Below, piece after piece: positions 1,065-64,000 of a stretch of 64,000 nucleotides of DNA. This stretch comes from Scyliorhinus canicula (lineage: Eukaryota): NCBI RefSeq assembly GCF_902713615.1, contig NC_052168.1, positions 5,580,001 to 5,644,000 on the forward strand, written 5' to 3'. The notes beneath the pieces were generated by a model, which worked only from the letters and a program-made list of their open reading frames with translations, was not told the DNA's origin and ran no database searches. A program made the position numbers and the translations under genes. Within the stretch, counting starts at the first letter, position 1. Each line of letters opens with the position of its first letter.

Positions 1065-1166
1065 CATGGCGAGGTACACATATGAGGTGTAGTACTCGAG
1101 GCCGATGAGTTTGTTGATGGCCGTCTCACTGTCTGGGTGAAAGTTCTGTCTCACCTGAGACTCCAT
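1065..1166 (-). CDS. Ferritin A, coding exon 1 ([34 protein letters not shown]); remaining exons lie left of the window
   Basis: Manual translation gives a ferritin helix-A sequence. Exon is 102 nt, identical to exon 1 of the ferritin at 46601, has a strong Kozak context (acgATGg) and a GT donor (GTAAAC) at the conserved position after Met34. Confidence 0.9.
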
Positions 1167-24100: not shown

Positions 24101-24234
24101 CACACACACACAGACAGTATAACACTGCACACACACAGACAGTATAACACTGCACACACACACAGACAGTATAACACTGCACACACACACAGACAGTATA
24201 ACACTGCACACACACAGACAGTGTAACACTGCAC
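21177..24234. repeat. ~3-kb compound satellite: palindromic CAGTGT-A-ACACTG core separated by variable (CA)n spacers
   Basis: Direct inspection; the long Cys/Val ORFs here are artefacts of the repeat. Confidence 0.97.
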
Positions 24235-46429: not shown

Positions 46430-46467
46430 GGTGTTGGTGGAGGAGCTGCAGCTCAGAATCCGGGTTA

Positions 46468-46499
46468 TATTCTTGCTTCAACAGTGTTTGAACGGAATA
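46468..46499 (+). promoter_or_regulatory. Iron-responsive element (IRE) in the 5' UTR of ferritin B
   Basis: TATTCT-TGC-TTCAA-CAGTGT-TTGAA-C-GGAATA: ferritin-type UGC/C bulge, 5-bp upper stem, CAGUGN loop at 46482-46487. Confidence 0.98.
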
Positions 46500-46600
46500 G
46501 AACCCAAACTTCGATACCTCGAACTCCCATTTTAGTTTGGAAAAAAACAAATTTTTTTTTTCAACACTTTGCCAACAACAACAACAACAGCAGCAACAGG

Positions 46601-48500
46601 ATGGCTTCTCAAATCCGCCAGAATTATCACCAGGAGTGCGAGGCAGCGATGAACCGCCAAATCAACATGGAGCTGTACGCTTCCTATGTCTACATCTCGA
46701 TGGTGAGGCCAGAGATATTTACTATGTGGGTGGAGGGATTCTGAATTGGGGGGGGGGGGTATTGAGCTGGCTGGGGCATTCTGTTTTTAATTGTAACCAT
46801 CGACGGGGTTGGGGGGAAAATCGGATCTTGCGGGGCAATCCTCTGGTCTAGGAGAAGGGCGTTGTTGCTTTTGTCTCCAGTACAAAGACTAGTCCCAAGG
46901 CTAGTTGGCCTCTCGCACATAATGTGCTTGTTTAAAGCTTTAAAAGTGCTCAGGTGAAAACCTTAACTGGGTGGAGAGCTGTGGCTGGCCTTGTCAATTT
47001 CCACTGGGTCAATTTCAGTAAAAACCTTACAGGGCGGAGAGCTGTTGCTGGCCTTGTCAATTTCCAGCGGATTGGAGAAATTGAACGAGTCTGGAGAAGT
47101 TTGTGTGCCTGGTTTCACGTAACACTTTTTTTTCTCTTCTCTCTTTCCCTTTGTCCCTCTCCCTCCCAGTACGCCTTCTTCGACAGGGACGATGTCGCCC
47201 TGAAGAACTTCGCCAAGTTCTTCAAAGACCAGTCCCACGAGGAAAGGGAACATGCAGAGAAGCTGATGAAATTCCAAAACCAGCGTGGGGGACGTGTTAT
47301 CCTGCAGGATGTCTCGGTTAGTACAAAAGGACTGACTTCCCACACGCCATGCCTCACTCGAGTCTCTCTCTTGTGTAGTCTAATTCTTTTTTTTTTCTTT
47401 CCCCTCCCCCTAGAAACCTGACCGCGATGAATGGAGCAATGGTCTCGAAGCCATGAAATGTGCTCTTCACTTGGAGAGAACCGTGAATCAGTCTCTCTTG
47501 GACCTCCACAAACTGGCTTCTGACAAGTTCGATGCACAAGTATGTATGGACCTCCCTCTGATTCCTTTGTTCTACCCAAGGCCAGTTTTTCTTGTTCTTT
47601 TTTAAACCCCTCCCAGGTTCAGTGTGGACTGTAGAAATGTTTTTCATCCAGCAATTGTTTTTTAAAATAATAACAGTAAACTTTTTTTTACAATCTATTT
47701 AACCTGCACATCTTTGGGTTGTGGGAGTGAAACCCACACACACACACACACACACACAGGTGCAAAGTCCACACGGACAGTGAATCGAATGTGGGTCCTC
47801 AGTGCTGTTGTTCCAGTGCTAACCACTGTCACATGCTGCTCTTTACCTAGCAAGTATTATCATTTTAAAAAAAAATTGTTTAAAAAAAAAAAATACCAAG
47901 ACAAGGGGCCAGGCTACTATCTACTTGAACCCAAGATTTTTCTTGAGGCAGATGTTTGGCTGGGGCTGGTTTAGCTCACTCGGCTAAATCGCTGGCTTTT
48001 AAAGCAGGCCAGCAGCACGGTTCGATTCCCGTACCAGCCTCCCCGGACAGGCGCCGGAATGTGGTGACTAGGGGCTTTTCACAGTAACTTCATTGAAGCC
48101 TACTCGTGACAATAAGCGATTTTCATTTTTTCATTGGGATAATGCTGAAATTGTTTAAAATCTCCAATCATTTTATGCTGACAAATATAAATTGTCCTCC
48201 CAGGACATCAACAACTAACTGGTTATGTGTTGTCCAGCATTTAATCGAAGACTTGATTAAGTACTGCACTAGCTGAACAATAAGTGTCTGAGGTTCATTA
48301 AAGCCATGCATATTAACAACACTGTCTTTTTAAATTTCTTCCAGATGTGTGATTTTCTGGAGACTCACTACTTGGATGAGCAGGTCCAGTCTATTAAGAA
48401 GCTTGGCGATTTCGTCACCAACCTGGTTCGTCTGGGGGCTCCCCAGAATGGTATGGCCGAGTATCTGTTTGACAAGCACAGTCTGGAAGAGAGCAGTTAA
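46601..48500 (+). CDS. Ferritin B, heavy/middle-type subunit, 176 aa; join(46601..46702,47170..47316,47414..47539,48345..48500)
   Basis: Four GT-AG exons of 102/147/126/156 nt; MASQIRQNY...[10 protein letters not shown]...[12 protein letters not shown]; ferroxidase residues E27, Y34, E61, E62, H65, E107, Q141 (human H numbering) intact. Confidence 0.97.
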
Positions 48501-51875: not shown

Positions 51876-51881
51876 TTTATT
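51876..51881 (-). terminator. Polyadenylation signal of ferritin C
   Basis: AATAAA on the minus strand ~260 nt after the stop, followed by GTTGCTGTTTTTG. Confidence 0.65.
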
Positions 51882-52142: not shown

Positions 52143-52298
52143 TTAACTGCTCTCCCCCAGGGTGTGCTTGTCGAACAGATATTCCCCCATGCCATTATCG
52201 GGAGCTCCCAATCGCTTCAAGTTAGTAATATGCTCTCCAAGCCTCGTAATGGCCACAATTTGCTCATTCAAGTAGTTTGATTCCAGGAATTCGCATAG
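52143..52298 (-). CDS. Ferritin C exon 4 ([51 protein letters not shown])
   Basis: Manual translation; polypyrimidine tract plus CAG acceptor at 52299-52301; this frame is absent from the ORF track. Confidence 0.93.
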
Positions 52299-55200
52299 CT
52301 GAAAGAGAAAGAAAATGGGGTCTCATCTCCATCCTGAAACTTACTTCGCCAACCTGGCACGCTCCAGCTTACAGCTCCCAGACCCTGCTGATGGGTTTGG
52401 AGTTATCAGCCTCAATCCCAATTACGTTATCCAGTTGAATAAGGAAGCAAATTTCAAGGCAGGAATTGTTCACAGCCAGTTAGATGGTTCTTTACGACCG
52501 CAGCCAGCCTCTGAGTCTCCCAGTGCAATAAAAAAAAGAACCCTGGGAGGTCTTGGCTCTCCTCCAATTCAGGCCTCTTGCAAACCCTGATTTAATCACT
52601 ACAACTCTGGTAAACCCTCAGCTGCTTCAGTCCCAAGACCTGGACTTGCCGCCCTCAACCTCGCCTCCTTTTGGATGCTCCTCACAACCTCTTTAATTTA
52701 TTCTTTCACGGGCTGTGGGTATCGCTGGCAAAGGCGGCATTTATTGCCCAGTCCTAATTACCCTTGAACGAGTGACTTGCCAGACCATTTCAGGGGACAG
52801 TTAACATTGATCTGGAGCCATACGTAAGCCAGAGCAGGTAAGGACAGCAGATTTCCTTTCCGCCAGGGCATTAGTGAACCAGAGACTTTTATTTATTTTT
52901 GTATAAATTTAGAGTACCCAATTTTTTTTTCCCAATTAAGGGGCAATTTAGCGTGGCCAATCCACCTACCCTGCAGAGCTTTGGGAGGTGGGGGTGAAAC
53001 CCACACAGACAAGGGGAGAATGTGCAAACTCCACACGGACAGTGACCCAGGGCCGCGATTCGTCCTCTGCGCCGCAGTCCCAGTGCTAACCACTGTGCCA
53101 CCGTGCCGCCCCACCAGAGATTTTTCTGACAATTGGTGATAGCTTTGCGGTCAGCATTACTGAGCCGAGCTCACAACTGTAGATTTTATTAGCTTACCTT
53201 TTGAGATTTTGTTGATTGCATTTTTAAAAATTTAGTGTACCCAATTAATTTTTTCCCAATTAAGGGGCAATTTAGCCTGGCCAATCCACCTACTCTGCAC
53301 ATCTTTTGGGTTGTGGGGGAGAAACCCATGCAGACAAGGAGAGAATCTGCAAACTCCACACGGACAGTGACCCAGAGCCGGGCTCGAACCTGGGACCTTG
53401 AGGCAGCAGTGCTAACCACTGCGCCGCCGTGCTGGCCTTATTGATTGCATTTTTAAAAATTCCACAAGCTGCCATGGTGGAATTTGAACTGAAGCACCTA
53501 TCCAGGCGATATCTGACAAAGATTGACATCGAGCCTCTTAAAGGGGAGGCCCAGGCTAACACTCTGGGGCTTCAGTTCAAATCCCACCATGGCAGCATGT
53601 GGAATTTTAAAAAATGCAATCAATAAGGGCAGCACGGTGGCACAGTGGGTAGCACTGCTGCCTCACGGCACCAAGGTCCCAGGTTCGATCCCGGCTCTGG
53701 GTCACTGTGGACTTGGGGAGAGTGCTCTTTCGGGCCGAAAGGCCATCCTCCGCACTGCTGAGATTCTGTGATTATATATAAATGACAGCTAGGGGCAGCA
53801 CGGTGCTGAGGACCTGGGTTCGAATCCCGGCCCTGGGTCACTGTCTGTGAGGAGTTTGCACATTCTCCCCGTGTCTGCGTGGGTTTCACCCCCACAGCCC
53901 AAAGATGTGCGGGTTAGGCGGATTGGTCACATTAAATTGCCCCTTAATTGGAAAAAATAATTGGGTACTCTAAATTAAAAAAATATATATATAAATGACA
54001 GCTGTTGTATTTGCCCGCCTGTGAATCAGCGTTTGAAGCAGGTTCGTTAATATGATTCCGGGGTGTGACTATGTGGGGGTTTTCTGCCCTTTTGGAGTGG
54101 AACGTCTCTCCACGCCTTACAAAGTAAACGACGGACAGGATCATATATCCCCTTCCTGATCCACCAACCATCAATCAATCACGGGGCATTTTAATAATCT
54201 TTACCCTATCCAAGAGGAGCAAAGCAGGGCAGAGTCACAGAGTATATTCTTGGTTAGATTCTCCCCGTTTATGTTTAATCTGTAAGCTCTACAGGTGAGA
54301 ATGAGGCTGTTCAGCCTTTGGCCCCTGTGCTGGCCCCATGGGAGAGCTATCTAATTCCATCCCACTCCCCTATCCGTTCGCCGAACTCCTTCAAAACTTT
54401 ATCTTTTCAAGCGTTCACCCAATTCCCTTTGGAAAATGACCACTTAATCTGCTGCCACTGCTCGTTCAGGCAGCAGATTTCCAAACCACTACAGTTGTAT
54501 CGAACCTTGGTATGGTCGCACTTGGAATATTGCACACAATTCTGGTCGCCACACTACTAGAAGGATGTGGAGGCTTTGGAGAGGGTGCAGAGGAGGTTTA
54601 CCGGGATGTTGCCTGGTCTGGAGGGTGTTAGCTATGCGGAGTGGCTGAATAGACGCGGACTGTTTTCATTAGAAAGACGGAGGTTGAGGTGCGACCTGAT
54701 AGAGGTCTATAAGATTATGAGGGGCATGGATAGAGTGGATGGGCAGGCACTCTTTCCCAGGGTGGAGGGGTCAGTCACCAGGGGGCATAGGTTTAAGGTC
54801 CGTGGGGCAAAGTTTAGAGGAGATGTGCGAGGCAGGTTTTTTACACAGAGGGTGGTGAGTGCCTGGAACGCGTTGCCAGGGAAGGTTGTGGAAGCAGATA
54901 CATTAACGGCGTTCAAAGGGCATCTTGACAAACACATGGATAGGATGGTAGAGAGGGCACAAGGAAGTGCTGAGGGTTTTGGCAAAGATTGGTATCGACC
55001 AGTACAGGCTTGGAGGGCCGAAGGGCCTGTTCCTGTGCTGTATTGTTCTTTGTTAAGTAAAAAAGCAAATCACTGCGGCGCTGGAATCAGAAACAAAAGC
55101 AGAAAATGCTGGACAATCTCAGCGAGTCTGACAGCATCTGTGGCAAGAGAAGGGAGCTAACGTTTCGAGTCTGGATGACTCCTTATCAAAGCCAGAGAGG

Positions 55201-58200
55201 GCTGGGACAGGGCTGAGATTTATACTGTTGTGGGGGAGGCGCGAGCAGTCGGGGCAAATCATGACTCGCTGCCTTAAATTTCTTTAATCTTCATCTACCC
55301 CTCTGTTTCTTTCTTTAATTATCTTAAATCTGTGTCATCCGGTTACCGGCCCTCCCACCAGTGAAATAGTTTCTCCTCATCTATTCCACCCAAACGTCTC
55401 ATCAATTTTAAACACAAGAGATTATTGTGCAAGATTAAAGCGCATGGGATTGGGGGAAGTGTACTGAGGTGGATAGAAAACTGGTTGGCAGAGAGGAAAC
55501 AAAGAGTAGGAATTAATGGGTCCTTTTCAAATTGGAAGGCAGTAACTAGTGAGGTGCCACAGGGATCGGTGCTGGGACCCCAGCTATTCACATTACATAT
55601 TAATGATTTGGATGAGGGACCAAAAAAAGTAACATCTCAAAGTTTGCAGATGATACCAAGTTGGGTGGGATGGTGAACTGTGACGTGGATGCAGAGATCC
55701 TACAGCATGATCTGGACAGGTTGGGCGAGTGGGCAAGTCAATGGCAGATGCAGTATAATTTGGATAAGTGTGAGGTAATTCACTTTGGAAGCAAAAACAG
55801 GAAGGCAGATTACTACCTGAATCGTTGTAAATTGGGAGAGGGGGCGTGTGCAGCGAGACCTGGGTGTCCTTGTGCACCAGTCGCTGAAGGTAAGCATGCA
55901 GGAGCAGCAGGCGGTAAAGTATGCTGGCCTTCATTGCGAGAGGTTTCGAGTATAGAAGCAGGGATGTGTTACTGCAATTATACAGGGCCTTGGTGGGGCC
56001 ACACCTAGAATATTGTGTGCAGTTTTGGTCTCCTTCTCTGAGGAAGGATGTTCTTGCTCTCGAGGGAGTGCAGCGAAGGTTTACCAGACTGATTCCAGGG
56101 ATGGCGGGACTGTCACATGACGAGAGATTGACTAGGTTAGGATTGTTCTCGCTGGAGTTCAGAAGAATGAGGACAGACTTATAAAATTCTAACAGGACTA
56201 GACAGGGTAGATGCAGGGAAGATGTTCCCGATGGTGGGTGTGTCTAGAACCAGGGGTCACAGTCTGAGGATTCAGGGTAAACCATTTCGGACAGAGATGA
56301 GGAGACATTTCTTCACCGAAAGTGTGGTGAGCCTTTGGAATTCATTACCACAGGAAGTAGTTGATGCTAAAACATTGAATATATTCAAGAGGCGGCTGGA
56401 TATAACACTTGGGGAGAATGGGATCAAAGGTTCTGGGGAGAAAGCAGGATTAGGCTATTGAGTTGGATGAACAGCCATGATCGTGATGAACGGCGGAGCA
56501 GGCTCGAAGGGCCAAAAGGCCTCCTCCTGCTCCTATCTGCTAGGTATCTATGTAACGTCGATCATATCCACGCAGAACCTTTTCTGCTTTTAAGGTTGGT
56601 AAATTTATACATAAAATCTGGGTGGTCAAGGTTTGGCGAGATTCGCGCAACTCACAGAATGATCATCCTGGTCGGACGCCAGTTTGTGTAGGTCCAGGAT
56701 ACACTGGTTCACTTCCTTCTCCAGGTGCAGGGCCTGTTCCATCGCCTCTAAGCCGTTGCCCCATTCGTCCTGTTTGGGTTTCTGGAAATAAAGGCAAAGT
56801 GGCTCACTGGAGCTGAAGGACATTTCGTAACGTTGGGCGAAGCGGGTGGGAAGGGAAAGCAAAGGGGACGGAGAGATCTCCCTCCCGCTAACCTTGATGT
56901 CCTTGAGGATGATGCGACCTCCGCGCAGATTCTGAAACTTCATCAGCTTCGCAGCATGTTCCTGCTCCTCGAGCGACTGCTCCAAGTAAAACTTGGCAAA
57001 GTTCCTCAGAGCGATATCATCCCGCTCGAAGTAGTAGGCCTGAAGCAGAGAAGACAAGGGAGTGACGACGGGACTCAGGGCACCCTCGCTTCCACGGCGC
57101 GCACCCTCCCGACACGAACGTACTTCATTTCAACCATTCACTGCCGAACACGATTGCTGAGCAACGTGTCGCCACGGGGACCCCTTCGGCCCTTCAAAAT
57201 GCTATCCCACAACATCTTCTCAGGACAAATAAGAATGGCTAAGGGTCAGCTGTGCCTCAGTGGGTAACCCTCTTACCTGACTTCGAAGGTTGTGGGTTTC
57301 CACACACTCCAGAGAGGTGACGCTCCTCTTGTAGTTTGGAGCACCGCATTGTTGTGAGACACGAAACCGAGGTGGAATTAAAAGATGCAATAGCGCTACT
57401 TTGAAGAGCATGAGAGTTATCCCTGGTGCCCTGGCTAATATATATCCCTTAACCAAAATCACTAAAACAAATTCAGATGATATAGTCTTTCTCTCATTGA
57501 TGTTTGTGTAAGCTTGCTGTATGCAAGTTGGCTGGCGCGCTCCCTAATGGTCAGTGGTGACTAAACCTCAGGAAAGTACTTAATTGGCTGGAAGTGCTTT
57601 GGGGATATCCTGAGGATGGGAAAGAGTCTATATAAATGCAAGTTCTTTCTTTAACAATGGAAGGGCAGGGTTAGCCCTGCTGCCTCACGGCGCCGAGGTC
57701 CCAGGTTCGATCCCGGCTCTGGGTCACTGTCCGTATGGAGTTCGCACATTCTCCCCGTGTCTGCGTGGGTTTCACCCCCACAACCCAAAGGTGTGCAGGT
57801 TAGGTGGATTGGCCAGGCTAAATTGCCCCTTAATTGGAAAAAAAAAATAATTGGGTACTCTAAATTTATAAAAAAAAACAATGGAAGTGCCTATGTAAAC
57901 ATGTCACACTGCTGTTACATCCTCCTGCCACTGGAGGCTCTGCATCTCCGTAGGCAGAAGGGTGTATGTACAACATGACGGGCTTACATACCTTATAAAC
58001 AGGACATCGACCTGGGAGGAATGTGAGTTGATGTAACAATCTGAGGAAGTTCCCCTTGCAATTAAGGACATTACATTTTCCTTCCACATCTCTTGCTGAT
58101 TCTTGTACAAGGACATCCAGATCCCTCTGCATTTTAGCAGTCTCTCATTAGTTAAATAATAGTTTGCTTTTCTGCCAAAGTGGCCCAGCTCATATTTTCC

Positions 58201-61200
58201 CACATCATACTTCATCTGCCAATTATTTTGCCCACTCACTCAGCCTATCTAAATCCCTTTTCAGACTGTACCCTCCTCACATCTTGCATTCCTACCGATC
58301 TTTGCATCATCAGCAATTCTGGCTACGCCAGTCCCTTCATCCAAGTCATTAACATAGGGAGTAAATAGTTCAGGTCCCTGTGGCACTCCACTAATTATGT
58401 TTGCCAACCTGAAAATGACCAATTTATCTCGATTTTTGTTTTCTTGCATGACAATGGTAAGATGTTAGTAAAATTGGATGATTAATGTAGTGGGCAATGT
58501 TAAGGGTCAAACACCTGGGGTTAGAATGTGTGTGTTTAAAAAGAATTCTGTTCTGCGGGGCCCGGGTGGTTTTAGCGGCCAGCAAGTGAAATTGACAGAG
58601 GAATGTGTTTGTCAGTCTGGGCTAATGCATCACGGTTTGCCTGGGGAAGTTGTTTTTCAGCTTGAAGAGATGAGGTCATTTCGGGCTGGAGCCCAGGAAG
58701 GCAGAGAGAGACATTTTGAAAGTATTAGAGAGGCAACTGGTGGAGAAACTCTTTGGAGAGAGGAGTTGCATTCTGATCTGCCTGATACTGAGTCCACAAA
58801 TCTCCCGCAGTAAGTTAGATTGAGATCTGTATGTTTCTTTTCTTATTGTTTAATGGGAAATTGAGTAGCATTGTTCAAGGTGTAAATTGTAAGCTGTTAT
58901 TTCTGGGTGTGAAGTTAAAAAGTTTAATATTGTAGTTATAATAAAGTTTTAAAACTAACCAAGCACTATTTCTTCATGCAATCACTCCTGGAGCGAATCA
59001 TTCTTTCCACAAATAAACTGAAATATTGGGGATTTGGTCCAGTATCCTAGCCACTGTTGGGATCTGGTCTGGGATCGTACTACTGAATCCATGCTAATAT
59101 ATCAACCACGACACCATGGGCCTTTATCTGGTGCAGTTACTTTTTACGTGGCACCTTATTGAATGCCTTTTGGAAATCTAAATACATTATATCTACTGGT
59201 TCCCCTTTATCCACCCTGCTTGTTACATCCTCAAAGAACGCTAATCAATTTGTCAAATATGTTTTGCCTTCCACAAAAACGTACTGACTCTGCCTGTTGC
59301 CTTTTGCTTTTTCTAAATGCCTTACTACTACTTCCTTGAGAATGGATTCTAGCAATTTCCCAATGATAAATGATGGATTAGTCTCCACCAACTCTCTTCA
59401 ACAGTATAAAATCCATCACATTTCTACTTCTAAACAAGAGTCATATGGGCTCAAAACGCAAACTCTGTTTCTCTCTCCACAGATGCTGCCAGACCTGCTG
59501 AGTTTTTTCCCAATACTTCCTGTTTTTATTTCAGACTCACAGCATTAGGGGCGTTTTGCTTTAATTATAGTTTCCTGCTTTCCGTCTCCCTCCTTTCTTG
59601 AATATAGCAGTTACATTTGTGGTTTTCCAATCCTTTCCAGAACCTGGAGAATTGTGAAAGATTACGACCAATGCATCCATTGTCTCCACACCATTTCCTT
59701 TAAAAAAAAATCTAGGGTATGGTAATTGGGCGGAGGACCGACTGGGTCCCTGTGCGGAGAACCTGGACGTAATGGGCCGAGTGGCCTCTGTGCTGGCCAT
59801 CAGGTCCAGATGTATCAACCATTAGTGCCATTAGCTTTCCTCCTACTTTTTCGCCACTGATAGTGATTGTTGTACGTTCCTCCTACCATTTGCCTTTTCA
59901 TTACCAATTATTATTGGTATGCTTTATGCAAACAGATAACAAACGTTTGTTCAAAATCTCTGCCATTTCTTTGTTTCCCACTATTAATTCTCCAGTCACA
60001 CCTTTTAGGGGCTGGTTTAGCACACTAGCTAAATCGCTGGCTTTTAAAGCAGACCAAGGCAGGCTAGCAGCACGGTTCAATTCCTGTACCAGCCTCCCTG
60101 AACAGGCGCCGGAATGGGGCGACTAGGGGCTTTTCACAGTAACTTCATTGAAGCCTACTCGTGACAATAAGCGATTTTCATTTCATTTTTTTTCATTTTT
60201 AACGGGCCAGTGTTTACTTTAGCTACTCTCTTCCTTTTTATATACTTGTAGAAAGTGTAATTGTCTTTTTATATTACTTCCTAATTTTCTCACATATCCC
60301 AATTTCTCTACTCATCCTTCACCAGCTTTGAATGTTCCCAAACTTCTGGCACTAATTTGTCATGTTTTCTTTCAACTTGATACCCCCCCCCTTAACCTCC
60401 TTCTACAAATGATGCACCCTTCTCGTAGTATCTTTATCAATGGACTATATCTTTCTTATGAAAGACCTCCTTCACAAGGGCAGCACGGTAGCATGGTGGT
60501 TAGCATAAATGCTTCACAGCTCCAGGGTCCCAATTTTGGTTCCCGGCTGGGTCACTGTCTGTGCGGAGTCTGCACGTCCTCCCCATGTGTGCGTGGGCTT
60601 CCTCCGGGTGCTCCGATTTCCTCCCACAGTCCAAAGATGTGCGGGTTAGGTGGATTGGCCATGCTAAATTGCCCGTAGTGTCCTAAAAAGTAAGGTTAAG
60701 GGGGGGGGGGGGGGGGGGGGGGGGGGGTTGTTGGGTTACGGGTATAGGGTGGATACGTGGGTTTGAGTAGGGTGATCATTGCTCGGCACAACATCGAGGA
60801 CCAAAGGGCCTGTTCTGTGCTGTACTGTTCTATGTTCTAAATGTCTGCCACCCCTTTGCCACTGTCTAACCCTGCACTGCTGGCCTTGTTCTGCGTCACA
60901 AAGCAACTGTCTAGCCAACTGAGCTACACTGGCCCCCATACCGGCTGAGATTATTCATGAAGGCCCCACTTTCTCAACCTTGCACCTCGCCTGAGGTGTG
61001 GTGATCCTCAGGTTAAATCACCACCAGTCAGCTCTCCCCCTTAAAGGGGAAGCAGCCCGTGGTCATCTGGGACTATGGCGACTTTTGCCGTACCTTAGTC
61101 TAACCTTTCAATGTTTTTTTTGCCATTCCACTTTGGCCAACTCTGTTCTCATGCCCTTGTAATTGCCTTTATTTCAGTTTCAGACAGCAGTTTGGACACA

Positions 61201-63168
61201 AATTTCTCACCCTCAAACTGAATGTGAAATTCTATCATGTTATGATCGCTCTTACCTAGAAGATCCTTTGCTATGAAGCCATTAATTAATCCTGTCTAAT
61301 TACACATTACTAAGTCTAAAATGGCCTGTTCCCTGGGTGGTTCCAGAACAGCCCGGTAGCACAGTGGGCAGCACTATTGCTTCACGGCTCCAGGGTCCCA
61401 GGTTCGATTTCCGATTGGGTCACTGTGGAGTCTGCACGTTTTCCCAGTGTTTGCGTGGGTTTCACCTGGGTGCTCCGGTTTCCTCCCGAAAGACGTGCTA
61501 TTCGGTAATTTGGACATTCTCCCTCTGTGTACCCGAACAGGTGACGGAATGTGGCGACTAGGGGCTTTTCACAATAACTTCATTGCAGTGTACTGTAAGC
61601 CTACTTGTGACAATAAACATACTGTTCTAAGGAATTGTCGCAATTATACTCTAATGAACTTCAGGCTACGTTTGCCAATTTGATGCATCCAATCTTAAAC
61701 AGTGAGGATCTGCTGGAATTCTGTCCTGAGATGTGTCCGTTGAATGGGACCCGCTGGATTTTCTCCTCACATTGTTGGAATTTTTTTCCTGGGACATCCT
61801 GTATTGAATGGAATGCTCTGGAATTTCCTCCTGGAATGTGTCAGTTTCTTCTTGGGACGTGCTGTGACTGACGCAGGTACTGGGATTTCTTCTTGGGAAA
61901 TGCATGCTCCCTCCTGTGGTGTGCTGAGATTCTACATTGGAAGATGCTGCAATTCCCTACTTGGATACCCCTGAATTCACCACTGGGATTCCCTCTTCGG
62001 ATGTGCTGGGATTGGGATTTGCTTGGATTCCCTGTGGGGATTCTTTATTGGGCTGTGCTGGGATTACCTGTTTGGATATGCTGGGTCTGTTGGGATGTGA
62101 TGAAATTCTGTTGGGGTGTGGCAGAATTCTGTTATGGCATGCTGGGATTATCTGTTGGTGTCTTTGGGATTTCCCTGTTGGGACATGCTGGAATTGCCTG
62201 CTGGGTGTACTGGGGCATGCTGGGATTCCCTGTTTGGGTGCACTAGGAACGCCTGCTGGGTGTGGTGGTGGGGATGTGCTAGGATTGCCTGCTGGGTATA
62301 CTGTGATTTCTAGTTGCAGTGTGTTGGGATTCCCAATTGGGGGTGTGCTGGGATTGCCTGCTGGTGGTGCTGGGATTGCCTGCTGGGGGTGCTGGATTCC
62401 CGGCTGGGATTGCCTGCTGGGATTGCCTGCTGGGAGTGTACTTAGATTGCCTGCTGGGGTTGCTGGGATTCCCTGCTGGAATTGCCTGGTGGTGCTGGGA
62501 TTGCCTGCTGGAATTGGCTGGTGGTGCTGGGATTGCCTGCTTGTGTGCTGGGATTGGCTGCTGGGGGGGTTGCTGGGATTGGCTGCTGGGATTGCCTGCT
62601 GGGGGGGGGGGGGGGTGCTGGGATAGCCTGCTGGGTGGGTGCTGGAATTGCCTGCTGGGGGGTGCTGGGATTGGCTGCTGGGGGGGGGGTTTGCTGGGAT
62701 TTGCTTGGGGGGGGGGGGTGCTGGGATTGCCTGCTGGGTGGGTGCTGGAATTGCTTGCTGGGGGGGTGCTGGGATTGGCTGCTGGGGGGGGGGGGGGTTG
62801 CTGGGATTGGCTGCTGGGGGGGGGGGGGGTTGCTGGGATTGTCTGCTGGGGGGGGGGGGGGTGCTGGGATTGCCTGCTGGGAGGGGGGGGGGTGCTGGGA
62901 TTGCCTGCTGGGAGCACCGGGCTCTCACCATGGACAGGTAGACGTAGGAGGCGGTCAGCTCCTGGTTGATCTGTCTGTTGATGCCATCCTCACATTCCCG
63001 CGGGTAATTCAGGCCGCTCCCTCGGCCCTGCGACCCCCTCCGGATCAGCAGCTGCGGCCCGGCGGCGGGGGAGCGGCAGAGCGAGAGCGGGCCGGGCCGG
63101 CACAGGAGGCGGCAGCCGGGCTGCAGGCCCAGCCACAGGCCGGGCAGGAGGCCCCACAGGCTGCCCAT
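52143..63168 (-). CDS. Ferritin C with N-terminal extension, 222 aa; complement(join(52143..52298,56656..56781,56893..57039,62929..63168))
   Basis: GT-AG exons of 240/147/126/156 nt at ferritin-conserved positions; ...[35 protein letters not shown]...QSLEEQEH.../KPKQDEWG...LHLEK.../[13 protein letters not shown]...[15 protein letters not shown]; no frameshift or internal stop. Confidence 0.93.
54490..55055 (+). mobile_element. CR1 LINE 3' fragment in intron 3 of ferritin C
   Basis: [52 protein letters not shown]. Confidence 0.92.
55418..56552 (+). mobile_element. CR1 LINE RT and 3' fragment in intron 3 of ferritin C
   Basis: [41 protein letters not shown] peptides. Confidence 0.93.
56656..57039 (-). 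CDS. Ferritin C exons 2 (56893-57039) and 3 (56656-56781)
   Basis: ORF 56626..57057 reads through both exons and the in-frame 111-nt intron; donors GTTAGC and GTGAGT. Confidence 0.95.
58450..59079 (+). mobile_element. LTR-like repeat; related copy ends at ~9645-9800
   Basis: Shared 3' sequence CAAATAAACTGAAATATTGGGG...GGTCCAGTATCC...TCTGGTCTGGGAT; interrupts a minus-strand CR1. Confidence 0.55.
61700..62912. repeat. Low-complexity (GCTGGGATTGCCTGCTG-Gn) repeat in intron 1 of ferritin C
   Basis: Direct inspection; degenerates progressively away from exon 1. Confidence 0.9.
62929..63168 (-). CDS. Ferritin C exon 1: putative targeting presequence plus helix A
   Basis: 80 codons from the only in-frame ATG before the ferritin domain to the donor ATG|GTGAGA. 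Confidence 0.85.
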
Positions 63169-63432
63169 GGGAGCGCGGACAGGCCGCGGCGTGAGGGGCG
63201 GGGCGAGCGCGCGGCCGCCGGGACTGCCGATTGGCCGCTAAGGCGGGCGCCATATTGGGAAGGGCGTGTGGCGGCGGGTCCGGGCGGCCGCCATTTTGAG
63301 CGGTTCCACATTAGTGTCTCCTTCCTTCCGCCATTTTGGGGTGTGGCAGACCCTCCGCCATGTTGGGTGTGGCCAACCCTTCGCCCTGTTGGCTGTGGAA
63401 GACCCTCCACCATGTTGGGTGTGGCAGACCCT
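63169..63432 (-). promoter_or_regulatory. CpG-rich, apparently TATA-less promoter of ferritin C: GC box 63195-63204, CCAAT 63230 and 63254, YY1-like CCGCCATTTT 63288 and 63328
   Basis: High CpG density and motif matches; no CAGTG-loop IRE seen. Confidence 0.65.
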
Positions 63433-64000
63433 CCTCCCAACCTGGCCCATGTTTGCCTCTGGCTGCTCCATGGAGAGGGCCACAGCACAGAAGGAGGCCA
63501 CCCGGCCCGTCGTGTCCACGTCAGCTCACGGCCTGCGCAACTCGCCCACGCCCCGCAATCTATTTCCCAGAGCCCATTCGATTCCACTTGAAAAATCACG
63601 ATCGAATTCACCTGTGTTCGGGCATCGCGCTCTGGATCTTGCTGCCCGGTGAAAGTATTTCATCGGAATTAGGAGCAGAAGTCAGCAAGTCAGCCCTTGA
63701 GCCTGCTCCGCCATTCAATCAGATCGTGGCCGATCTCTTCCTGGTATCAAATCCACCTCCCTATCTGTTCCCCAAAGAACAAAGAAAAGTACAGCACAGA
63801 AACAGGCCCTTCGGCCCTCCAAGCCTGTGCCGACCATGCTGCCCGTCTAAACTAAAATCTTCTACCGGGGTCCGTATCCCTCTATTCCCATCCTATTCAT
63901 GTATTTGTCAAGATGCCCCTTAAACGTCACTATTGTCCCTGCTTCCACCACCTCCTCCGGCAGCGAGTTCCAGGCACCCACTACCCTCTGTTTGAAAAAC

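Follow-up and report, generated by a model that had tools for sequence, protein, structure and literature searches.

Mitochondrial ferritins are described from few lineages: a 2026 review limits them to mammals, Drosophila, and some plants. Mammalian FTMT has no iron-responsive element (IRE) and is transcribed from a GC-rich promoter (PMC5022048). Drosophila Fer3HCH has been shown to be mitochondrial, as cited in PMC13010531, a precedent for mitochondrial ferritin arising independently more than once. In sharks, an expansion of the ferritin family is known from a Greenland shark preprint, without mention of a leader-bearing member, and our literature search found no paper linking mitochondrial ferritin with sharks. 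Here we describe an H-type ferritin gene with a long N-terminal extension in a 64,000-nucleotide stretch of the catshark Scyliorhinus canicula genome (NC_052168.1, positions 5,580,001 to 5,644,000; the whole stretch is referred to as the window). An original prediction, made from the letters of the window, had proposed a mitochondrial ferritin at this locus.

The locus is a real H-type ferritin gene with introns, without an IRE, and with a presequence-like extension. We assign a probability of roughly 0.7 to the reading that it is a nuclear gene, particular to sharks and rays, encoding a mitochondrial-type H ferritin. It resembles FTMT in its H-type chain, intact ferroxidase center, and long, Arg-rich, nearly acid-free leader (57–70 aa in seal and guinea-pig FTMT), and the leader hydrophobicity and charge profiles of the two are similar. 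FTMT, however, is an intronless retrogene within mammalian FTH, whereas the shark gene keeps three introns, adjoins its presumed parent, falls in a separate clade, and has an unrelated leader sequence; FTMT localization is experimentally established, whereas that of the shark protein is predicted from sequence.

Other ferritins offer partial parallels. Canonical FTH1-type ferritins (the neighboring catshark gene; 1fha and 4oyn) share the fold, catalytic residues, intron positions, and exon lengths of 147/126/156 nt, but the neighbor carries an IRE in its 5′ untranslated region (UTR), whereas the leader-bearing gene lacks both the IRE and the canonical Met and has 46 extra codons. Its clade-specific residues include NYP for NYH, EEQEH for EEREH, and LCEFLES. 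Drosophila Fer3HCH and the Bemisia "ferritin 3" (P0241) likewise combine introns with an N-terminal leader, but these invertebrate leaders are rich in Lys, Ser, and Thr, not in Arg, Gly, and Pro. The lineages are distant, and their only common ancestry with the shark clade is that of the ferritin family as a whole. Secreted ferritins of the insect and mollusc kind (example, P0263) also place a hydrophobic leader on the ferritin domain; theirs is about 18 aa long, reaches KD8 3.1, and abuts the domain, whereas the shark leader spans 29–65 aa, is less hydrophobic, and is Arg-rich throughout.

Both catshark genes are already in RefSeq under generic names, and none of the orthologue names we encountered says mitochondrial.

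Gene structure and product

The catshark gene comprises the following features, all on the minus strand:

63168..52143, minus strand: leader-bearing H-type ferritin gene, four exons, 222-aa product
62929-63168, minus strand: exon 1 coding sequence, 80 codons, ATG at 63168, ending ...YVYLSM and then a gtgagag donor
63010..63168, minus strand: N-terminal extension, codons 1-53 of exon 1; RRG↓S at codons 43-46, predicted cut between 63034 and 63033
62929..63009, minus strand: rest of exon 1, start of the ferritin domain (NYPRECE...YVYLSM, helix A), then the GT donor
56893..57039, minus strand: exon 2, 147 nt, helix B; E61, E62, and H65 (human numbering)
56656..56781, minus strand: exon 3, 126 nt, helix C; E107
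52143..52298, minus strand: exon 4, 153 nt plus TAA (156 nt), helices D and E; Q141
51876..51881, minus strand: AATAAA, likely polyadenylation signal, ~260 nt past the stop codon

Exons 2–4 were located by tblastn with the neighboring ferritin as query, and their borders were fixed by reading the sequence. All three introns are GT–AG, in phase 0, and at ancestral positions; the lengths of exons 2–4 (147/126/156 nt) equal exactly those of the neighboring canonical ferritin, and the three ancestral introns are thus in place. The joined 222-aa product is identical letter for letter to RefSeq XP_038639298.1 (P0001; "ferritin heavy chain-like", Scyliorhinus canicula), to which the ferritin domain PF00210 is assigned. 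Solved PDB H-chain ferritins match residues 53–221 (E ~1e-74), and the mature part is 64% identical to the neighbor. The ferroxidase ligands E27, Y34, E61, E62, H65, and Q141 (human H numbering) are present in catshark and invariant across the orthologue alignments, E107 is retained in each orthologue possessing exon 3, and the acidic three-fold-channel positions are conserved across the shark/ray clade. An AlphaFold2 model built on a 12-row alignment is poor (mean predicted local distance difference test score 53) and usable for helix order only: it places helices A–E in order and leaves residues 1–56 unstructured.

Ahead of the ferritin domain stand 53 residues, 46 codons beyond a canonical ferritin. 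Arg occupies residues 20, 24, 32, 43, 44, and 49, the first acidic residue is E58, and an RRG↓S motif spans residues 43–46. An in-frame TAG at 63240 lies 24 codons upstream of the ATG at 63168; there is no other in-frame ATG, and the canonical ferritin start position carries no Met. Much of this had been read correctly from the catshark letters in the original prediction: six Arg in the first 50 aa, no Asp or Glu before residue 58, no Met at the canonical start, an RRG↓S site (its cleavage predicted) near the start of cytosolic ferritin, and ferroxidase residues and three ancestral introns that are intact by alignments, exon lengths, and GT–AG borders.

Two introns have features of their own. 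Intron 1 contains a G-rich minisatellite at 62321–62912 (unit about GGGGGGGTGCTGGGATTGCCTGCTGG) that begins 17 bp past the donor of exon 1; it is free of stop codons, which lets the mechanical open reading frame (ORF) from ATG 63168 extend 403 codons into the intron. Intron 2 (56782–56892, minus strand; 111 nt) is in frame and stop-free, and its retention would add 37 residues in the helix B–C loop; since the Heptranchias intron 2 is 116 nt, this open frame is probably due to chance.

Conservation in sharks and rays

Protein searches and a cluster look-up yielded leader-bearing orthologues in 14 elasmobranch species:

Sharks: S. canicula, S. torazame, Mustelus, Cetorhinus, Rhincodon, Stegostoma, Chiloscyllium, Heptranchias, Pristiophorus
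Batoids: Narcine, Rhinoraja, Leucoraja, Hemitrygon, Pristis

The gene is not a novelty of one species: it occurs, extension included, in all 14 elasmobranchs sampled. Exon maps of Heptranchias, Narcine, Rhincodon, and Leucoraja follow x/147/126/153+stop with identical junctions; exon 1 alone varies (168–258 nt). In six species—catshark, Heptranchias, Narcine, Rhincodon, Mustelus, and S. torazame—the gene lies tail to tail with a 176-aa ferritin.

Skate provides a transcript. A 945-nt contig (L007; Logan, run SRR13269370) encodes all 216 aa of the Leucoraja product in one uninterrupted frame. On the skate genome it divides into four exons, joined at the same three junctions as in catshark. The SMART template-switch oligo opens the contig, ~15 genomic bases and then the MGS start codon follow, and a Nextera adaptor closes it. 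The contig is thus a cDNA captured at its 5′ end just before the conserved ATG, leaving no upstream exon and no room for an IRE. For this orthologue, though not for the catshark gene, that answers the main refuting condition set in the original prediction, namely transcripts that begin downstream of the ATG or use another first exon.

Sequence comparison points to coding constraint on the extension. Between catshark and Heptranchias, 8 of codons 1–17 differ, 7 of them synonymously, with 2, 1, and 7 nucleotide differences at the three codon positions, and the 60 nt upstream of the ATG are unalignable among species. Between Rhincodon and Stegostoma, exon 1 contains frame-preserving indels of 9 and 24 nt; indels in the flanks measure 1, 1, 25, 16, and 11 nt (300 nt upstream) and 10, 1, 1, and 12 nt (intron). 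Because the changes are mainly synonymous, the indels in frame, and the skate cDNA begins just before the conserved ATG, these comparisons indicate that the extension is translated and constrained.

Several lineages show peculiarities. Stegostoma carries an in-frame 24-nt duplication (L005 3001-3270 versus Rhincodon L003 10001-10237) that places SQGPRRWG twice in the extension and shows how leader length drifts. Orectolobiform orthologues have EEQKH in place of EEQEH beside the ferroxidase site. In Heptranchias, another ferritin gene (183 aa; L001 3062-9641) stands head to head with the orthologue, 360 bp upstream of its ATG, which suggests a shared bidirectional promoter in that species; at the Rfam gathering threshold this ferritin has no IRE.

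Outside elasmobranchs, no bony-vertebrate member of the clade surfaced in the protein searches, an absence from searches rather than proof of absence. Among the best 150 representatives, the other leader-bearing ferritins are invertebrate, mammalian retrocopies, or fused gene models. A Callorhinchus ferritin (P0290) was considered as a chimaera orthologue and rejected: it has 176 aa, a canonical start, and a degenerate ferroxidase site, and falls outside the clade. In this gene (L004 10001-12007), which adjoins an intermediate-filament gene, HKERSNA replaces HEEREHA, and its product may be an L-like, catalytically inactive chain.

Composition of the extension

The catshark extension DNA is 80% G+C with a third-position G+C (GC3) of 0.98. 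When shuffled, it contained no Asp or Glu in 32% of trials and no stop codon in 72%, and the mean number of Arg in the shuffles (9.0) exceeded the 6 observed. The Arg and acid composition of this single sequence, offered in the original prediction as an argument, is therefore not beyond chance at 80% G+C, and the case must rest on comparative data.

Across species the picture is more distinctive. The 14 extensions (29–65 aa; 747 residues in total) contain 118 Arg, 6 Lys, 3 Asp, and 1 Glu, and net charge ranges from +6 to +10 in the ten orthologous extensions computed. Over the four species with DNA, 7.9 Asp and Glu are expected from composition and 0 are observed (P ~4e-4). A QLx(I/V/R)RR(G/A) motif occurs in 10 of the 14 species, at a distance of 13–15 residues ahead of NY(P/S), the opening of the ferritin domain. 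Of the four acidic residues in the whole set, three fall after RR(G/A). The start of the extension, MGS(L/R)(W/R), is also conserved.

Hydrophobic maxima of the extensions (KD8 1.5–2.4, KD12 1.2–1.9) are comparable to those of the seal and guinea-pig FTMT presequences (KD8 2.4–2.5, KD12 1.4–1.9), and lie below those of the single clear signal-peptide ferritin used for comparison, P0263 (KD8 3.1, KD12 2.6). In each orthologue the hydrophobic run is followed by 20–45 further Arg-rich residues. The maximum hydrophobic moment is 0.43–0.57 in the extensions versus 0.31–0.53 in FTMT leaders, and Pro and Gly are abundant in the extensions. A protein-atlas look-up of residues 1–56 returned weak matches only (≤0.76), to ferritin-like and diiron clusters, and was uninformative.

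IRE and promoter

The neighboring canonical ferritin provides an internal control for the IRE:

46465..48500, plus strand: convergent canonical 176-aa H ferritin, exons 46601-46702, 47170-47316, 47414-47539, and 48345-48500; IRE_I at 46465-46500

Rfam finds a single IRE in the whole 64-kb window, at 46465–46500 (42.9 bits), 100 nt before the neighbor's ATG. Near the leader-bearing gene it finds none even at E≤10 over 1.2 kb (exon 1 plus 832 nt upstream to the window end), which, with the neighbor's IRE as positive control, bears out the earlier claim that this gene lacks one. In four species—catshark, Heptranchias, Narcine, and Rhincodon—the IRE is present only at the convergent neighbor, and Rfam detects none in the skate cDNA, the skate locus, the zebra-shark locus, or the other orthologous loci read.

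The DNA immediately upstream of the catshark ATG has the character of a promoter:

63169..63434, minus strand: GC-rich promoter-like flank, with the in-frame TAG at 63240
63248-63434, minus strand: 26-bp ×4 tandem repeat and nearby copies with AAnATGGCG

CCAAT boxes lie at 63258 (−90) and 63234 (−66) and a GC box at 63203–63195 (−35). Four sense-strand AAnATGGCG motifs precede the catshark ATG, two of them (three with the AACATGGTG variant) in the 26-bp ×4 tandem repeat at 63327–63434. For the stricter AAnATGGCGG, 3 of the 4 matches in the window fall in this flank, with 0.33 expected by chance in the whole window. Sense-strand AAnATGGCG copies also stand upstream of the orthologous ATG in Heptranchias (5), Rhincodon (2), and Narcine (1); a composite CCAATATGGCG element occurs at −90/−88 in catshark and −126/−124 in Heptranchias, and Narcine has a perfect cAMP-response element (CRE) at −52. 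We take AAnATGGCG to resemble a YY1 site or a translation initiator of short 5′ UTR (TISU) element, a matter of resemblance only. YY1, SP1, and CREB have been reported to activate human FTMT (PMC5022048). One of the AAnATGGCG motifs creates an upstream ATG at 63253 (minus strand), which is out of frame, in strong context (A at −3, G at +4), and opens an 87-codon ORF overlapping the main start codon.

Phylogeny and origin

In a maximum-likelihood tree of 50 ferritins, the leader-bearing shark and ray genes group as a single clade (100/99). Seal, guinea-pig, and pocket-mouse FTMT fall inside mammalian FTH (100/94), beside axolotl FTH, and the catshark neighbor groups with coelacanth and the tetrapod/teleost H/M clade (90/89). 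Alternative topologies were compared by the approximately unbiased (AU) test. Forcing the shark clade and FTMT together is 36 log-likelihood units worse and is rejected (AU p=0.00076). The elasmobranch presequence-bearing ferritin is therefore not an FTMT orthologue and arose independently of it, as the original prediction had held, and the distribution of the clade indicates that the gene predates the shark/ray split. That split took place more than 250 million years ago.

The same prediction had invoked a local gene duplication. Tail-to-tail pairing with an IRE-bearing ferritin is conserved and fits such a duplication; the tree is neutral, neither favoring nor rejecting (AU p=0.17) the shark clade as sister to the neighbor's lineage. 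An inverted duplication of the adjacent IRE-bearing FTH1-type gene is probably the origin. For the fuller scenario—that elasmobranchs acquired a mitochondrial ferritin of their own when an inverted tandem duplicate of the IRE-bearing FTH1 gene lost its IRE and gained a presequence where the 5′ UTR had been—we judge the balance to be modestly favorable.

Derivation of the leader itself from the ancestral IRE-bearing 5′ UTR was examined and rejected; alignment of the neighbor's 5′ region with the extension is no better than alignment of shuffles, and no CAGTG loop is present.

Predicted mitochondrial import and alternative readings

Under the mitochondrial reading, the gene would be transcribed from a GC-rich, TATA-less promoter immediately upstream of ATG 63168. 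The resulting short 5′ UTR without an IRE would let synthesis escape iron regulatory protein (IRP)/iron control. In the 222-aa precursor, an extension of ~45–53 aa, rich in Arg, Leu, Gly, and Pro and almost acid-free, would act as a matrix-targeting presequence. After import, cleavage near RR(G/A) (RRG↓S in catshark) would leave a chain starting within about one residue of the cytosolic ferritin start. With all ferroxidase ligands and the acidic three-fold-channel positions, the mature chain would assemble into a 24-mer that oxidizes and stores iron in the matrix. Such a gene would have arisen before the shark/ray split, independently of the mammalian FTMT retrogene.

Import of the leader-bearing ferritin into mitochondria is the probable outcome predicted from these features. 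A mitochondrial presequence is favored by the 29–65 aa length, the positive net charge, and the near exclusion of acids along the whole leader; by the conserved Arg-Arg motif at a plausible processing site; by hydrophobic maxima within the FTMT leader range and below the signal-peptide ferritin; and by Arg residues that break the hydrophobic run in orectolobiform sharks and batoids. Loss of the IRE, paralleling FTMT (PMC5022048), is a further reason.

Several observations weigh against this reading. The first 19 residues of the catshark product are uncharged and moderately hydrophobic, the abundant Pro and Gly disfavor a long amphipathic helix, and Hemitrygon has a Glu upstream of the proposed RR(G/A) cleavage motif. 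The open frame, Arg richness, and lack of acids in the catshark extension lie within chance at 80% G+C. Transcript evidence comes from the skate orthologue, whose cDNA starts before the same ATG and uses the same three junctions, rather than from the catshark gene itself. The ATG at 63253 would repress translation if it lay in the mRNA; for this reason, and judging by the skate cDNA, the catshark transcription start is probably downstream of 63253. Finally, four sharks, including Mustelus, Cetorhinus, and Heptranchias, have a borderline run resembling a signal-peptide core (KD8 2.1–2.4; catshark 1.5).

That run bears on the best-surviving alternative, a secreted or endoplasmic reticulum (ER)-lumen ferritin in which residues 1 to ~18 form a signal peptide and an Arg-rich propeptide is cut at the dibasic RR, as in the secreted ferritins of insects and snails. 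Catshark, Heptranchias, Cetorhinus, and Mustelus have an uncharged, Leu-rich LLPGL.LGL after MGS (KD8 up to 2.4); when Heptranchias and catshark are compared, no other part of the extension is as well conserved, and RR could act as a convertase site. Arg, however, interrupts the run in the orectolobiforms Rhincodon (R6, R11, and R13), Stegostoma, and Chiloscyllium and in several batoids, and Narcine has a weak AGPAVAGSLL. What the clade shares as a whole is therefore positive charge in the near absence of acids rather than a hydrophobic core. Authentic FTMT presequences are just as hydrophobic. Acids are nearly absent over the entire 29–65 aa, which a propeptide would not need; the mature domain of XP_038639298.1 has no N-glycosylation sequon; and in the clear signal-peptide ferritin, P0263, an 18-aa leader directly abuts the domain. 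We regard secretion as unlikely.

Less likely again is a cytosolic ferritin that keeps its N-terminal tail, for example for N-myristoylation at Gly2 that would anchor it to membranes, or as a regulatory or degradation tail. Met-Gly-Ser opens 12 of the 14 orthologues, and MGSLWG fits the loose myristoylation rule of Gly2, a small uncharged residue at position 3, and a small residue at position 6. Five orthologues, however, carry Arg at position 6 (Rhincodon, Stegostoma, Chiloscyllium, Narcine, and Hemitrygon), residue 3 is Arg in Cetorhinus, and the Rhinoraja protein begins with MAS. We know of no cytosolic vertebrate ferritin with a ~50-aa N-terminal tail on each of its 24 subunits, and such a tail would leave the acid-free composition and the RR(G/A) motif unexplained.

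Very improbable, and largely refuted, is the view that the extension stems from misannotation or chance, as a frame left open in the GC-rich 5′ region of an untranslated locus or decaying duplicate: catshark composition within chance and a transcript from skate only would allow it, but there is no alternative in-frame start codon, ATG and frame are kept in 14 species with mainly synonymous substitutions and in-frame indels, the ferroxidase residues are invariant, and a spliced full-length skate cDNA begins just upstream of the same ATG.

Neighboring ferritins and window context

The convergent neighbor is identical to XP_038639494.1 (P0021). Because it groups with coelacanth and the tetrapod/teleost H/M clade, the gene at 46601–48500 appears to be the genuine FTH1 orthologue among the expanded ferritins of sharks. 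The first exon of a third ferritin lies at 1065–1166 (minus strand; ...YVYLAM), with the remainder of the gene beyond the left window end; its upstream flank contains no IRE at the Rfam gathering threshold. Elsewhere in the window, a 3-kb minisatellite at 21173–24234 (25–27 bp unit, CACACACACAGACAGTGTAACACTGCA; ~120 copies) accounts for the strong GC and AT skew there.

Implications

If the mitochondrial reading is true, the gene would be the first of its kind from a vertebrate outside mammals, and the first vertebrate mitochondrial ferritin with introns retained. It would represent a further independent origin beside those of mammals, Drosophila, and plants, within an extraordinarily expanded ferritin family, and would bring a functionally distinct member to the very large set of shark ferritins. 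The gene would also serve as a natural comparison for asking what in FTMT is required—IRE loss, type of leader, and a GC-rich promoter with YY1-like motifs—and as an example of a targeting peptide appearing where a regulatory 5′ UTR used to be. A second vertebrate origin, by duplication with introns rather than by retroposition, would make mitochondrial ferritin a recurrent solution.

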